Positions 25,293-46,000 of a stretch of 64,000 nucleotides of DNA are shown piece after piece. Position numbers and translations under genes: made by a program. Source of the DNA: Octopus sinensis (Eukaryota). The DNA lies in NCBI RefSeq assembly GCF_006345805.1, contig NC_043011.1:66724464-66788463 (forward strand). The letters are read 5' to 3'. Every line of letters begins with the position of its first letter. Position 1 is the stretch's first letter. The notes under the pieces were generated by a model that saw only the letters and a list, made by a program, of their open reading frames with translations, did no database searches and had not been told where the DNA came from.

Positions 25293-28200
25293 TTATGCAT
25301 GTGTGAGCAATAATGTTACAAAAGCAGCTCTGGATACTGGCTGACCGCTAACCTGTAAAAGGAAGAAAAGTTTCGTTATTTGAGATTTAATAAAAACAAT
25401 GACGTAACGTGAATTAGGTGAGCCTTTTTGCTAGTGAGATGTTTTACTGTGCAATTCTTATCACTTCCATTAATTTCCGAACAGTCTATGTTATCTTCGA
25501 TGATATAAACACAAAATATATTAATCAGGGCCACATATAATTTTATGTTACTTATCAGGATTTGACAAGGTAGATTCCCCTATCAGGCGGAAGTGAATGT
25601 TGAGTTTTTTAAACATATACGCTATGTTTGCATAGGTGCGCTTTCTTGTGCATACCCTATCTTGTACTTTTATTGATTTTAAGCCCGAACGTTGACGTAG
25701 GTTTACTCGAATTGTTGCTAGATTCCATTTACACCCGCAGATGCTAACAATTGTTGAGGTAGAATAACTACGGTAATTACCAAACCAGCAGCCTTGAGAT
25801 CATTGTTCATTAAGGGGAAACTACAGAATCCTATTCTTAAACACTTTCTTTTCAGTTATATACACGTAATAATTAGCTGTACCATTGAACAATTGTTCGA
25901 TTTCAATTATATTTCGACGGGCTTGTAACCCCATAAATATTATATCATATGTATTATAAAGATTATACATATGGATGTTATCAAAATATATTCAAAATAT
26001 TCCTGTACGGATAACTCTAGCGCATTCGTATTATGAAACACTCAACGCATTCTCATAATTCTAATTCCTATGCTTACGGTGTAATTCAATGCTATTGTAA
26101 CTACACGGCCTCTTAATATAATTTTCTAAAACATAGAAACCATCTTTTAACTTTCTCAATCAAGGAAGGTTAAATAAATAACTGACGCGGGTATTTTACT
26201 GTGAACACTTCTACTTCAGTTAGGACGTTATAATGCACCCTTTTGCTTTCCAGAGGCTTTGCATTATATTTTATGCCCATGTTACCGTTATGGAAGTCAT
26301 ATTGAAATCGATTACCATACTATGTTAATAATAAAAAAATATAGAGCGTCAATTACAACAGATAGGTAGCGAGAGTATTGTAGTGTATGAAAATGGCATT
26401 TATACTTCAAATCGATATGGTTGTCATATATTGAAGACTCAGCGGCAGTAGAAATACTTTGCTTGCTCCAACTATGTTCCAGACGAGCTTGCCCGACGGA
26501 GAAGTATTCTGAAAAATATTTCGAATTGTGAAAAATTAGTTTCAAAAGCAATAATAGATTATCAAACCTATTCCCTTGCGAAAAATTATCCTCTGCTGAA
26601 TATAGAAACCATGATACATCAATCGATTACAGATCTTGCGAAATAGATTGTCAAAAGCAATTAAAACCACTGCAAGCATAACCGTTTATGACGTTTACTT
26701 CAATCGCTGTACGCCCTAGGGCCCATTATTTAGTATTGAATTGTTAGCTAAATATCATTCCTTCTTCCTTCGCACGATTGTTCCATCAAATGTGATTCAA
26801 AGAAAATTAAAGATGGTTTAGGTTCTTTAAAATAAAACAATGATTCTTAAACTCGCCAATTTCTCAGTCGATCTCTTTTAATGGAAATATAGTGAACACA
26901 AGGCAACGACTTACCCAGCATTTCTCCAAATTTGCAGACATAACATGAGTGTAACATTCTTTGTGTACTGCCTTCATGCATGATTCAAACCAAGTGACCC
27001 TTCTGGAAAGAGAAAATATGAGCGGAAATAATACATTCGGGTATTCTTGTATTGTTTACATTTTAAGAAAAACCCCAATGAAACTCTAGTTTCATGTAAT
27101 TCAATTTGTATTTTCTCTCTGGTAATTAGGTGAGCGTGATATATACACAGAAATACATATATATGTATATATAAATGCTTAAATAATTTTACAAAAGACA
27201 TATCCGTACTGGTTTCAGTCATTGTGAATTTTTCAACTGTAAGTATGCAAAACAATTAATTTTGGAAACATTTTAAAAAGCTTTTAAAAGTTTTTCAAAG
27301 AATATTTGTATAGTATTCAAATACAAGTTGCATTTTCATTGTTTCTGCCTGTCTCTGTCTCTCTTGTTTAACCTTTTGAATTCGAGGTCGTATGGAATTC
27401 TTAGTAGGGAAGAAGAAGAAGAAGAAGAAGGGGAGGAGGAGAAGGAGAAGAAGAAGAAGAACAACAACAACACCAACAACAACAACAAAAAGAAAAAGAA
27501 AACGTAGAAGAAAAAGAATGTCAGAGTGCAATGCCAGTAGTATGTTAAATGGTCAACTGCCAGCTGTGGATGGTAGTGGAGTGGTCAAGTGATCAGCTGT
27601 GGATGGAGGTAGTGATCGTTGAATTCCTGAAACATCTCTTTTCTATGTTTTGTTTATAAAATTTTCGTAGGGTGTTATTCTAAACAATTTTAGTGGTAAA
27701 GTTAGGGACAAAGAGGAACAAGACAAAAAAGATCTAATTGTATGTCTATGTGTATATATATATATATATATATATATATATATATATATATATATATATA
27801 TATATATATAGTTAGGTATAAAAAATTCAGGGTGAATACTTGATAACTGTAAGCACCTGTATATACCAGTTAGTGGTGTAGGTGATAGGGTATATTTATC
27901 AAAAGAAAAATAGGATGCAAAGGATTTAGCGGTACATATGTTTCTGACTTTATTGCGCAGTTTATATCAATGCATATTTGATGTAACATGTATGTCAATA
28001 GCCTTCTTCAGCCGGAGATTTGCTACATTAATCAAAGGAAATATTCAGGTTTATTTTCGCGATTCCATATAAATACAAGTAGCATTTTGGTAATAGTTTA
28101 CTAAATGAAAATATTTCTCAATATGCAATAACTTAATACTGGAACGAAAAGTAGGAACATGATATATATATATATATATATATATATATATATATATATA

Positions 28201-43042: not shown

Positions 43043-46000
43043 CGGGCACATATGCAACTCTAAATCTATAAAATGATTTAGACAAGCTTTGGATTTTCTC
43101 CTGATGCAAGATTTAAACTCACTGATGTTTCTGGAAAGGGAAAATATGAACGGAAATTATACACTCGGGTATTTTTGTATAGTTTGTATTTAAGAAAATT
43201 TTCGTATATTTGTTTAGTATTTTATTCCTTACTTAACTTTGGTAACATATTATTTGAATTATGGCTTGTATTGTAGGGTCCAACGAACCTAATTTAAACA
43301 TACCTATTATACACATACATAAGGTCTTTAAATATATATATATATATATATATATATATATATATATATATATATATATATATATAGTTTATTATATTGA
43401 ACGTTGATAAAGGGATATAAGGACCTGATGATTAGGGTTAGATTTTAAGACGGCTTCCAGGAAAACATTGCGTGGTTTAGAAACCGGAGTATGTACCTCA
43501 TGAAACACGTGTAGCTATGTAACAAAAGAGTAGGTAATTAAAATGAAAATTATTTTATATGGTGGAGATGAAGAGGCCTATCTCTAAATTAAAGATATTT
43601 CTTCATTGAGAATAATTTGAACCTCTGGTATGCCGGAATGTTTATTCCCTAACAAATAAAATTTATATAAATATATATATATATATATATATATAAATAA
43701 ATATTAGGGAATAAATCCAAATTTCCAGGGAAAAAAATCAGATTTAGGATTAAATCCAATTTTATAGTAAAATATTATAAAATATTATTAGAGACCTATT
43801 TATTAAAATTTTATGTATTGATTAAGTCTTTCCTTGTTTGTTTTGCAAATTAGTGGTTTTGTCTCTAATAATATTTTATATATATATATATATATATATA
43901 CATATGTATGTTTATATATGTGTGTATGTGTGTGTGTGTATATATATATACATAAGTATGCGAGTGTGTGTGTCCGTGTGTGTGCATATATATCTCTCTA
44001 TATATATAAATATCTGTATATATGTATGTATGTATATATATATATATATATATATATATATATATATATATATATATATATATATATATATATATATATA
44101 TATATATATATATATATATATACATATATATGTGAGTTTTTATGTATGTATATATATATATGTATATATATTTGTGCATATCGCCATGATAGATCGCTAG
44201 CCACTAAGCATTTATTCTTTCTGCTTATCTCTGTTTTTCCTTTCGGTCGAAAAGCGAAGGATCGAAACCTAAATGGCATTCTCAGTTTCCCGAGCGTCAA
44301 GCTAATACATCTGTTTCTTGTTTACACGCAAGACTTCGTCTTTTGCTTTTTTATAGTCTCATTATATATGTATATATATATACATATATATGTGTATACA
44401 GTTGCGGCCAAAGTGTTCAGAACGGAATTGTTTTCGACAGAACAGTAGGTATAAGTTTTTATCAAAGTTGTTTTATATTCTATAATTTTCACAGACAATG
44501 AATACGATATTAATTGTTATTGTCTGAGATTTTGGTGTAATTTCAGAGGATACTACAAAAGTTATAATTGATTTAGTGATTTACTGCAAAACCCATGGCG
44601 GCCAAAAGGATAAGAACGGTTGAAAAAATAACAAAATAATCAGAAATGACAGAGAATACTGGAATTATTTAATATTTAGTGTGAAGCCCTTTAGCTTCAA
44701 TCACACTTTGACATCTTCGACTGCATGAGGAAATTAAATTTTCAATTTCTTGCTGGGTGATCTTATTCCATTCTTCCTGAAGGGCTTTCCATAATTGCTT
44801 GGTTGTTTTAGGATTTCTGGCTTTCGAACGTTCTCCTAGAATATTCCATACATTTTCAATAGGATTGAGATCTGAGCTTTGAGCAGGCCAATCCATAACA
44901 ACAACCTTTTCAGCCTTGAGGAAGTTCATGACCACCTTAGCCTTGCGACATGGAGCATTGTCCTGCATCAATATGGGTGGTCACTTAGTTGAATTTCTCA
45001 GCACAGGCAACACATGATCTTTTACAAGTTGTTTATAAACTCCTGCATTTAACTTCCCATATAATCGCATCAAATGGCCCACTCCATCTCCAGATATCAT
45101 CCGCCAAACCATGACACTTCTTCCACCGAATTTAACACTAGTCTTAAGGCATTTAGGCGACAATTTTTCACCTACTTTTCGACGAACGTACCTTTTCCCA
45201 TCTGAGCCAAATAACATAAACTTAGATATATCACTGAAATGCACCGTTTGCCATTCTTCTTGAGACCACAACACATTGCAAAAGTAAGACGACACTTCTT
45301 ATTTTTGGAGCAGATCAGTGGCTTCACTGTAGGTGCTCTTGCTTGTAGGTCATGTTCAACTAAATGATGAGACACAGTTTTTCGAGATAAAGTTTTCTTC
45401 AGTACAATGCTCATTTCCCGAGAAACAGCAGCAGTAGCTTTAAATCTGTCCTTTTAACCAACGTTACCATAGCACGATCTTCTCTCTTGGTAGTTTTTCT
45501 TGGCCTACCTGTAAACTTTCTTGCTTCACACGAACCACAATCATTGTAGACCTTAAGAATACCGTGAACAGCACTTTTTGACTCGTTAACAATCTTTGCA
45601 ATAGATTCAATACTTAAATTATCCTTCTTTCGAAGCTTAATAATCTGCTGACGAATTGGCAACGGAGTAAGTGGCATTATATTAACAAAGTACGCTGCAG
45701 ATATTCTTACTAATGTTTAGTAAACGACTCATCACGTAAACAAATTCAAAAACATTATAGTTCGTCGGTTAAATATACTAAAACACGGAGTAAAAGCAAC
45801 CGTTCTGATCCTTTTGGCCGCCATGGGTTTGCAGTAAATCCTAAATCATCCATAACTTTTGTTATCCTCTCAAATTACACCAAATTCTTAGACAATAACA
45901 ATTAATATTGTATGTATTGACTGTGAAAATTATAGAATATAAAATAACGTTCTTAAAAACTTATACCTACTTTTCTGTCGAAAACAATGCCATTCTGAAC

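Follow-up and report, generated by a model that had tools for sequence, protein, structure and literature searches.

We have identified a tandem array of paralogous genes in Octopus sinensis in which the exons for a six-cysteine mature domain differ between neighboring copies several times more than the introns beside them. The array lies in a 64,000-nucleotide stretch of contig NC_043011.1 (NCBI RefSeq assembly GCF_006345805.1, positions 66,724,464 to 66,788,463 of the forward strand), referred to as the window, in which positions are numbered from the first nucleotide. We consider it likely that this Octopus array, which itself turns over, encodes a surface or secreted binding module whose mature domain is under diversifying selection.

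Four paralogs, g1 to g4, each with 4-5 exons and all on the minus strand, were rebuilt in the window along with remnants by aligning the repeat units and then enumerating phase-compatible exons. Splice sites, phases and reading frames are kept across the copies, which supports the models. Each gene's product is ~105 amino acids (aa) long and consists of a signal peptide, the six-cysteine domain, an S/P/G linker and a hydrophobic tail. The domain spans ~56 residues with the spacing C-x7-C-x12-14-C-x8-C-x7-C-x11-C is presumably locked by disulfides, and is divided between exons 2 and 3. The 37 nt of exon 1 specify MK followed by a hydrophobic stretch, and the exon closes in phase 1; exon 2 (91-97 nt) completes the signal peptide and bears Cys1-3; exon 3 bears Cys4-6 and corresponds to the second half of helix 2 plus helix 3; and exon 4 encodes the S/P/G-rich linker. 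All intact window copies of exon 3 have a length of 88 nt, as do the three copies examined from O. bimaculoides. The parts of g3 and g4 are as follows.

g3 exon 1: 33730..33766, minus strand; ATG and 12 signal-peptide codons, phase-1 donor GTAAGT, conserved promoter region upstream
g3 exon 2: 29039..29135, minus strand; 97 nt, end of the signal peptide and Cys1-3, a divergence island
g3 exon 3: 26915..27002, minus strand; CAG acceptor and GTAAGT donor, frame continuous with exons 2 and 4
g3 exon 4: 26407..26508, minus strand; linker and read-through tail, internal GC donor after 26467
g3 exon 5: 25293..25352, minus strand; hydrophobic tail resembling a glycosylphosphatidylinositol (GPI)-anchor signal
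g3 intron 3 start, conserved: 26576..26914, minus strand; aligns to g4 42708-43042 with ~9% divergence
g3 intron 2 end, conserved, upstream of exon 3: 27003..27071, minus strand; aligns to g4 43131-43198
g4 exon 1: 53762..53798, minus strand
g4 exon 2: 48796..48892, minus strand
g4 exon 3: 43043..43130, minus strand; 88 nt
g4 exon 4: 42478..42564, minus strand; internal donor destroyed (ATAAGC, 42523 region), so that only a read-through tail ending in SKTFLLPLSIQYITITKLL and a stop is possible

An exon 5 of g4 was looked for and was not found.

Divergence of the mature-domain exons

A sequence-only reading of the window had held that exon 3 keeps its length and cysteines and little else, next to an intron that aligns easily, and had concluded that the second half of the domain is hypervariable, with large charge changes. 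The peptides that it quoted translate on the minus strand from 26915-27001 (g3), 43043-43129 (g4) and 3664-3750 (g1), each exon being flanked by a polypyrimidine-CAG acceptor and a GTAAGT donor. Its count is right: of the 29 residues of exon 3, g3 and g4 have exactly 8 in common. Only Cys4, Cys5 and the Phe that precedes Cys4 by three residues are invariant in all four copies of the window; Cys6 is present in g1, g3 and g4 and was lost from g2 through a 1-nt deletion. The charge changes are of moderate extent only, because the peptides of exon 3 carry net charges of +4, -1, +1 and +2.

The intron does align, with 26 of 296 bases differing between g3 and g4 downstream of exon 3. When both flanks are counted, 36/403 positions differ (8.9%) compared with 36/88 (40.9%) in the exon (Fisher p = 6e-12). 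Exon 3 is thus 4.6 times as divergent as its flanks, clearly not at the neutral level expected from the intron, and in a sliding window divergence climbs and drops exactly at the exon-3 splice sites. Exon 2 behaves similarly (27/97 vs 17/478 in its flanks, p = 3e-12). Only 1 of the 37 bases of exon 1 differs, and exon 4 is no more divergent than its flanks. Because exons 2 and 3 are divergent and exons 1 and 4 are not, the hypervariable part is the whole mature domain. The earlier emphasis on the second half was therefore right in that exon 3 is the stronger of the two islands in this pair, but the variability is not confined to it. In the independent O. vulgaris reference assembly, exon 3 of g3 is identical and that of g4 has one difference, so these exon sequences are not assembly artefacts.

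Tests of selection

The ratio of nonsynonymous to synonymous divergence (dN/dS, or omega) between g3 and g4 was estimated for exon 3 by the Nei-Gojobori (NG86) method, giving dN 0.72, dS 0.21 and omega 3.5; for the 58-codon domain, NG86 omega is 2.4. A pairwise maximum likelihood (ML) codon model gave an omega of 3.8 for the domain, with a likelihood-ratio test p = 0.027 against omega = 1. For exon 3 alone the unbounded ML fit ran to infinite omega, and the bounded fit used in its place yields a lower bound only. Mature-domain dN is 0.555 and intron divergence (K) is 0.063, a dN/K(intron) of 8.9.

Counts of differences agree with these estimates. Codon positions 1, 2 and 3 differ 26, 21 and 15 times, respectively, and 20 of the 22 codons with a single difference are nonsynonymous. 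Among the codons that keep their amino acid, 2/20 have a synonymous difference. Synonymous divergence is thus low, which argues that the g3 and g4 exon sets share a recent ancestor and are not old lineages lying beside homogenized introns. Older pairs, which involve g1, are saturated and have omega < 1. These results support diversifying (positive) selection on the mature-domain exons, and they bear out the hypervariability proposed in the sequence-only reading.

A mutational process targeted to the mature-domain exons would raise their mutation rate with selection on the protein unneeded; such targeting was reportedly proposed earlier for conotoxin genes. It would fit the coincidence of the divergence islands with exons, and also the NG86 synonymous divergence of the exons, which exceeds that of the introns in all pairs, even in the constrained g2 lineage. 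We nevertheless regard this process as very unlikely to be the cause, given that 20/22 single-hit codons are nonsynonymous, that omega is 2.4-3.8, that the clean synonymous count is near the intron level, that exons 1 and 4 are not elevated, and that cysteines, hydrophobic positions and exon length are untouched.

Conserved scaffold and changing positions

An alignment of 29 family domains was used to define a scaffold of 14 columns that are Cys or hydrophobic in >=70% of members. At these columns g3 and g4 differ four times, always conservatively (T/I, V/I, M/I, V/F), compared with 32 differences at the remaining 42 positions (Fisher p = 0.003). The g3 domain is predicted by AlphaFold2 to form three helices, with a mean predicted local distance difference test (pLDDT) score of 86.9; a repeat of a multi-domain relative reached 90.9. 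Inspection of the alignment shows that conserved positions in helices 2 and 3 are spaced i, i+4, i+7, and we infer that the rewritten non-core positions are solvent-exposed.

Comparison with O. bimaculoides

An O. bimaculoides locus, L002 (CM046618.1, 49.20-49.24 Mb), is syntenic with the window. Gene order matches, with the P0008 gene corresponding to g4, P0002 to g3 and P0003 to g2; exons 2 and 3 measure 97 and 88 nt, respectively, phases are the same, and non-coding identity is 75-89%. The exon-3 comparisons are given below, with dN/K(intron) of the g2 lineage computed using the intact O. vulgaris reference copy of g2.

g3 versus P0002: exon 3 48/88, flanks 15.3%, p = 3e-13, dN/K(intron) 4.5
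g4 versus P0002: exon 3 28/88, flanks 15.2%, p = 7e-4, dN/K(intron) 2.9
g2 versus P0003: exon 3 21/87, flanks 16.5%, not significant, dN/K(intron) 1.5

Three-point arithmetic assigns ~28 exon-3 changes to the g3 branch and ~8 to the g4 branch since the two genes split, where intron divergence predicts ~4 per branch. Judged from these comparisons, the lineages of g3 and g4 are strongly accelerated, and that of g2 weakly or not at all. Exon-3 identity of the O. bimaculoides and O. vulgaris relatives to g3 and g4 is 17-41%; that between g2 and P0003 is ~60-65%.

Array turnover and loss of g2

The remaining two genes of the window are laid out as follows.

g1 exon 1: 10172..10208, minus strand
g1 exon 2: 4998..5088, minus strand; 91 nt
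g1 exon 3: 3664..3751, minus strand
g1 exon 4: 2777..2878, minus strand; protein identical to g3 exon 4, within the g1/g3 block that is 98% identical
g1 exon 5: 1662..1721, minus strand
g2 exon 1: 20944..20980, minus strand; start codon lost, AAG here and ATG in the O. vulgaris reference
g2 exon 2: 16087..16183, minus strand
g2 exon 3, broken: 14886..14972, minus strand; acceptor changed from CAG to CAT, frame shifted and Cys6 removed by a 1-nt deletion
g2 exon 4: 14357..14458, minus strand; internal donor GTAAGC after 14417
g2 exon 5: 13214..13273, minus strand; ASSQSAFGAAIVTLLLTHT and a stop

Identity between g3 and g4 is a mosaic, with 99% in the promoter and exon 1, 96% around exon 2, 91% around exon 3 and ~70% in exon 4. 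The 5' region of g3 is 99% identical to g4 (33677-35219 vs 53708-54820), and its 3' 2.8 kb, including exons 4-5, is 98% identical to g1 (23873-26637 vs 220-3007). By these alignments g3 is chimeric, g1-like at the 3' end and g4-like at the 5' end, with breakpoints in introns. Such a mosaic points to recent events of gene conversion or unequal crossing-over among the copies of the array.

If gene conversion homogenizes non-coding DNA, introns could look young beside exons that are old lineages kept apart by selection. The mosaic and the 98% g1/g3 3' block are compatible with such a history, as are the star-like exon-2 distances among g3, g4 and P0002 (27, 28 and 32) and the excess of NG86 dS over flank K, which is 2.4-3.7 fold. 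We judge it unlikely. Codons that keep their amino acid differ in only 2/20 cases, and the proportion of synonymous differences (pS) is 0.20 compared with 0.5-0.76 in the truly old comparisons with g1. The differences are also biased to codon positions 1 and 2. Moreover, the flanks are conserved up to the splice sites, so that two conversion tracts would have to end exactly at an 88-nt exon and do so again at exon 2.

In the window genome g2 carries three disabling changes: ATG>AAG, the exon-3 acceptor change CAG>CAT and the 1-nt deletion in the codon for Cys6. None of the three occurs in the O. vulgaris reference (L001 25664-25700 and 31067-31155), which is otherwise ~98.5-99% identical around g2 and in which the gene is intact through exon 4, where the stretch examined ends before exon 5. 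Either the loss of g2 is very recent, or the broken copy is a null allele that segregates.

Could all copies be decaying pseudogenes or chance open reading frames (ORFs), with exons diverging by neutral drift? The broken g2 points that way, as do isolated remnants of exons 1 and 5 and a second copy of exon 2 without Cys1, described below. Neutral decay, however, cannot surpass the divergence of flanking introns 4-9 fold; g1, g3 and g4 keep their frames, splice sites, six cysteines and an indel-free 88-nt exon; and the architecture is kept in O. bimaculoides RefSeq models. We find this explanation extremely improbable.

Alternative 3' ends and the hydrophobic tail

Exon 4 contains an internal donor directly after a GGA codon, which reads GTAAGC in g2, GCAAGC in g1 and g3, and a dead ATAAGC in g4 (donor positions 26467/26466 in g3, 2837/2836 in g1 and 14417/14416 in g2). 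From this donor a 60-nt exon 5 can be reached, which is conserved between species and codes for a short hydrophobic C-terminus (e.g. ASSQSAFGAAIVTLLLTHT and a stop). When unspliced, exon 4 reads through to an alternative tail. O. bimaculoides RefSeq models show both ends, P0002 being read-through and P0003 spliced. Paralogs and species alike keep the nucleotide sequence of the read-through region (TTTCTACTGCCGCTGAGT..CAATATAT), which may serve as a coding tail or as a splicing element within the intron. In most single-domain relatives an S/T/P-rich linker leads into a hydrophobic stretch at the C-terminus with a Kyte-Doolittle hydropathy (KD) of 2.1-3.2, and this C-terminus resembles a GPI-anchor signal.

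The proteins might instead be secreted effectors, such as salivary or venom components or antimicrobial peptides, with the hydrophobic C-terminus a pro-peptide or an annotation artefact. The gene layout, in which signal peptide and introns are conserved while mature exons with a cysteine framework are hypervariable, follows the classic conotoxin pattern (see PMC3862624). Three relatives (P0006, P0015 and P0012) have no hydrophobic tail, and g4 has lost its exon-4 donor along with any exon 5 that we could find. On the other side, most single-domain relatives carry the S/T/P linker and hydrophobic stretch that are typical of GPI signals, exon 5 is kept between species, no known octopus venom component matches, and Pfam returns only a weak similarity to RGM_N, the N-terminal domain of repulsive guidance molecules (RGMs). 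We judge a purely secreted role unlikely.

Proposed explanation and its weight

The explanation that we consider likely is a tandem array whose exons hold six cysteines, about eight hydrophobic positions and exon length as nearly all other positions are replaced. Amino-acid-changing substitutions outpace the adjoining introns several-fold, as a consequence of diversifying selection on the mature domain. The array turns over by duplication, by gene loss, and by gene conversion or unequal crossing-over that homogenizes the non-coding and terminal parts. The domain itself would be a binding or recognition module, at the cell surface or secreted, and its partner would be one that changes quickly, e.g. 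a pathogen, a gamete or another non-self ligand.

Several results weigh against this explanation. Omega is significantly >1 for the g3-g4 pair only, on 58 codons, and the g2/P0003 lineage is not accelerated (omega ~0.4-0.6). NG86 dS is 2.4-3.7 times flank K, which leaves room for homogenization of or constraint on introns or for a locally raised mutation rate. Since gene conversion is active in the array, the intron "clock" is local and not global. The spliced tail of g1 and g3 is weakly hydrophobic (KD 1.7), and the exon-4 donor there is GC, not GT. Finally, a Foldseek search with the g3 model ranked RGMB first at a non-significant E of 3.7 and a template modelling (TM) score of 0.34, and a search with a second model did not find RGM and gave no significant match.

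Cephalopod genomes are known for lineage-specific gene expansions; to our knowledge, few of these have been shown to be under strong diversifying selection. The family described here combines an exon/intron contrast between neighboring paralogs as sharp as in cone-snail toxin genes (dN ~9 times intron divergence) with a copy that is intact in one genome and broken in another, no literature, and a seeming restriction to Octopus. It offers a tractable candidate for a system engaged in recognition or in an arms race, in an animal without adaptive immunity.

Family membership and annotation

A full HMMER scan of 1.84 billion cluster representatives with a profile built from g1, g3 and g4 returned 16 proteins, 15 of which are uncharacterized proteins from O. 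bimaculoides, O. vulgaris and O. sinensis. P0002 matched with E = 6e-36 over positions 1-107, P0003 with 1e-15 and P0004 with 5e-14; the similarity extends along the whole protein, signal peptide and tail included. O. bimaculoides members are LOC128249755-758, -822, -826, -827, -838, -839 and -887 (e.g. XP_052830203.1 and XP_052830201.1), and an O. vulgaris member is CAI9735841.1. Most members lie in one chromosomal cluster. The family-wide spacing is C-x7-C-x12-16-C-x8-C-x6-8-C-x11-12-C, in which the six cysteines are the sole invariant alignment columns; g1, g3 and g4 have spacings of 7/12 or 14/8/7/11, like every single-domain relative. The Octopus relatives share cysteine spacing, signal peptide, exon structure and C-terminal tails with the window genes, and, unlike these, some carry 2-8 tandem domains. 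P0006, P0015 and P0012 are relatives that lack the hydrophobic tail.

Narrower searches found little. In a word-indexed protein search, the sole match to g3 was one mis-modelled O. vulgaris protein; a word-indexed profile search gave four matches with a mixed alignment of single- and multi-domain members and none with the domain alignment. Literature searches by topic and locus name returned no paper on the family or its loci.

Current annotations mis-model family genes in both O. vulgaris and O. bimaculoides. The O. vulgaris model P0001 contains g3 exons 2-3 exactly, joined to non-homologous first and last exons (36505-36642 and 24599-24718), and is probably a mis-model in which the real exon 1 and the tail exons are absent. 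In O. bimaculoides RefSeq, two neighboring genes are merged as isoforms X1/X2 of LOC128249758.

P0012 (L003) is encoded on an intronless 322-nt contig of a Campylobacter fetus assembly (GCA_016612925.1, JAENPT010000070.1) and has a signal peptide and six-cysteine domain followed by a stop, with no tail. The contig looks like contaminating animal cDNA. P0012 shares VT..K.VH..C.TH with g3 and was considered as donor of the g3 type of exon 3; this was dropped, as the assembly is contaminated and there is no nucleotide similarity to the window or L002. The lack of nucleotide similarity to octopus loci implies that the family may exist outside Octopus. As it stands, this unnamed family is known only from Octopus and seems to be restricted to that genus.

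Other features of the locus

The window is AT-rich (~33% GC), dense in microsatellites and transposon fragments, and collinear at ~98% identity with the Octopus vulgaris chromosome record OX597831.1, 19.03-19.06 Mb. Scanning the window for Rfam families and tRNAs returned nothing. Remnants of the repeat unit include a solo first exon with its promoter, designated g5:

g5, solo exon-1/promoter copy: 62535..62571, minus strand; weak GTAGTT donor

No exons 2-3 were found downstream of g5 in the window. An exon-5-like remnant with in-frame stops lies at 63704-63763 and is part of a unit that runs past the window end. O. bimaculoides L002 likewise has extra exon-1/promoter copies, around 5.3, 10.0 and 17.7 kb. 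Intron 2 of g1 (4665-4761, minus strand) holds a second copy of exon 2 with intact splice sites and the same phase, in which Cys1 is replaced by Tyr. It sits in a ~330-nt tandem duplication (4649-4991 vs 4982-5286, 81% identity) and may be a pseudo-exon, or else an alternative exon used in a mutually exclusive way.

The first ~330 nt of intron 3 are kept in all four paralogs (26576-26900, 42708-43030, 14560-14880 and 3300-3660). This stretch is ~85% identical in O. bimaculoides, compared with 75-81% typical for the surrounding non-coding DNA, has no Rfam match, and may hold a regulatory or splicing element.

Tc1/mariner-like transposase ORFs occur in g4 intron 2 (44672-45716, minus strand), and fragments that by eye resemble a long interspersed nuclear element (LINE) endonuclease occur in intron 1 of g3 and g4 (31229-31699 and 50596-50862, minus strand). 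A 2.6-kb A-rich repeat has direct copies at 39249-41815 and 55820-58436 (95% identical) and an inverted partial copy at 60568-61254. Between the g3 3' end and the g2 promoter, at ~22000-23300 on the plus strand, is a G-rich, C-poor stretch of ~1.3 kb with 45% GC and a GC skew of +0.45, which is not a tandem repeat.

Comparison with known systems

A Pfam scan of the window proteins gave nothing above threshold. RGM_N (PF06535) reached 15.7 bits with g3 (E 0.018) and 15.4 bits with g4, below the cut-off of 24.2. Sub-threshold RGM_N matches occur in 12 of 29 domains, where every other Pfam family has <=1, and P0005 scores 37.9 bits against RGM_N when summed over four repeats (cut-off 24.2). A profile search of the Protein Data Bank (PDB) listed RGMA, RGMB and RGMC at E 0.03-0.08, aligned on (F/Y)C-x8-C-x7-C; phmmer of PDB with P0005 gave no match. 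Calcitonin and calcitonin gene-related peptide (CGRP) receptor ectodomains were the top matches of the profile search (E 0.007-0.03), and look like a coincidence of cysteine pattern; they were rejected because they disappear with the multi-domain-repeat profile, while RGMB stays.

RGMs are GPI-anchored proteins encoded by slowly evolving single-copy developmental genes, and their RGM_N domain carries six cysteines. The RGM N-terminal domain (PDB 4uhz, 4uhy, 4bq6 and 6z3m) and the octopus domain are both small and helical and share (F/Y)C-x8-C-x7-C. The third helix is shorter in octopus, with x11 compared with about x22 in RGMs. No Pfam match to RGM_C was found in the window proteins or their relatives. 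Unlike RGMs, the window proteins lack the RGM_C/von Willebrand D part, the GDPH autocleavage site and the RGD motif, and are only ~105 aa long. The octopus proteins are not RGMs, since the RGM C-terminal domain is absent. The octopus fold is probably distantly related to the RGM N-terminal helical domain, and on the features compared the two would have no more in common than a helical module of shared ancestry and anchoring of the GPI type.

A more far-reaching idea, which we regard as speculative and improbable, is that an RGM-N-like helical ligand-binding module was turned, specifically in Octopus, into a tandem, GPI-anchored, hypervariable repertoire for cell-surface recognition. If true, it would be a lineage-specific repertoire for non-self or pathogens, for gametes, or for self versus other on skin and suckers, with a diversity fed by extreme positive selection, by gene conversion and the gain and loss of genes, and by alternative anchoring at the C-terminus. 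A possible relationship with the bone morphogenetic protein (BMP)-binding RGM N-domain gives a concrete structural hypothesis.

Ly6/uPAR proteins have eight to ten cysteines and a three-finger fold of beta-strands, unlike the six cysteines and all-helical AlphaFold2 model here, and there is no Pfam UPAR_LY6 match. Insect odorant-binding proteins are helical with six cysteines spaced C2-x3-C3 and C5-x8-C6; the octopus domain differs in having C2-x12-14-C3 and C5-x11-C6, and has no PBP_GOBP match. Among known octopus venom components, none match.

There is also a likeness of evolutionary pattern. Accelerated mature exons beside conserved introns and signal peptide are known for conotoxins, snake venom phospholipase A2 (PLA2) and three-finger toxins (see PMC3862624 and PMC3847720). 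As in conotoxin genes, a conserved signal exon and introns accompany a hypervariable mature exon with a fixed cysteine framework and tandem duplication, a resemblance of pattern and not of homology. Unlike conotoxins, the octopus proteins have a helical domain, a GPI-like tail and a mature domain spread over two exons, and there is no relationship in sequence or fold. The "RAVER" model of three-finger toxins places variation on exposed positions, and variation in the octopus domain likewise falls on non-core positions, which would be exposed. The family is thus new and uncharacterized, and the evolutionary pattern that it displays is one already known from venom, immune and reproductive genes.

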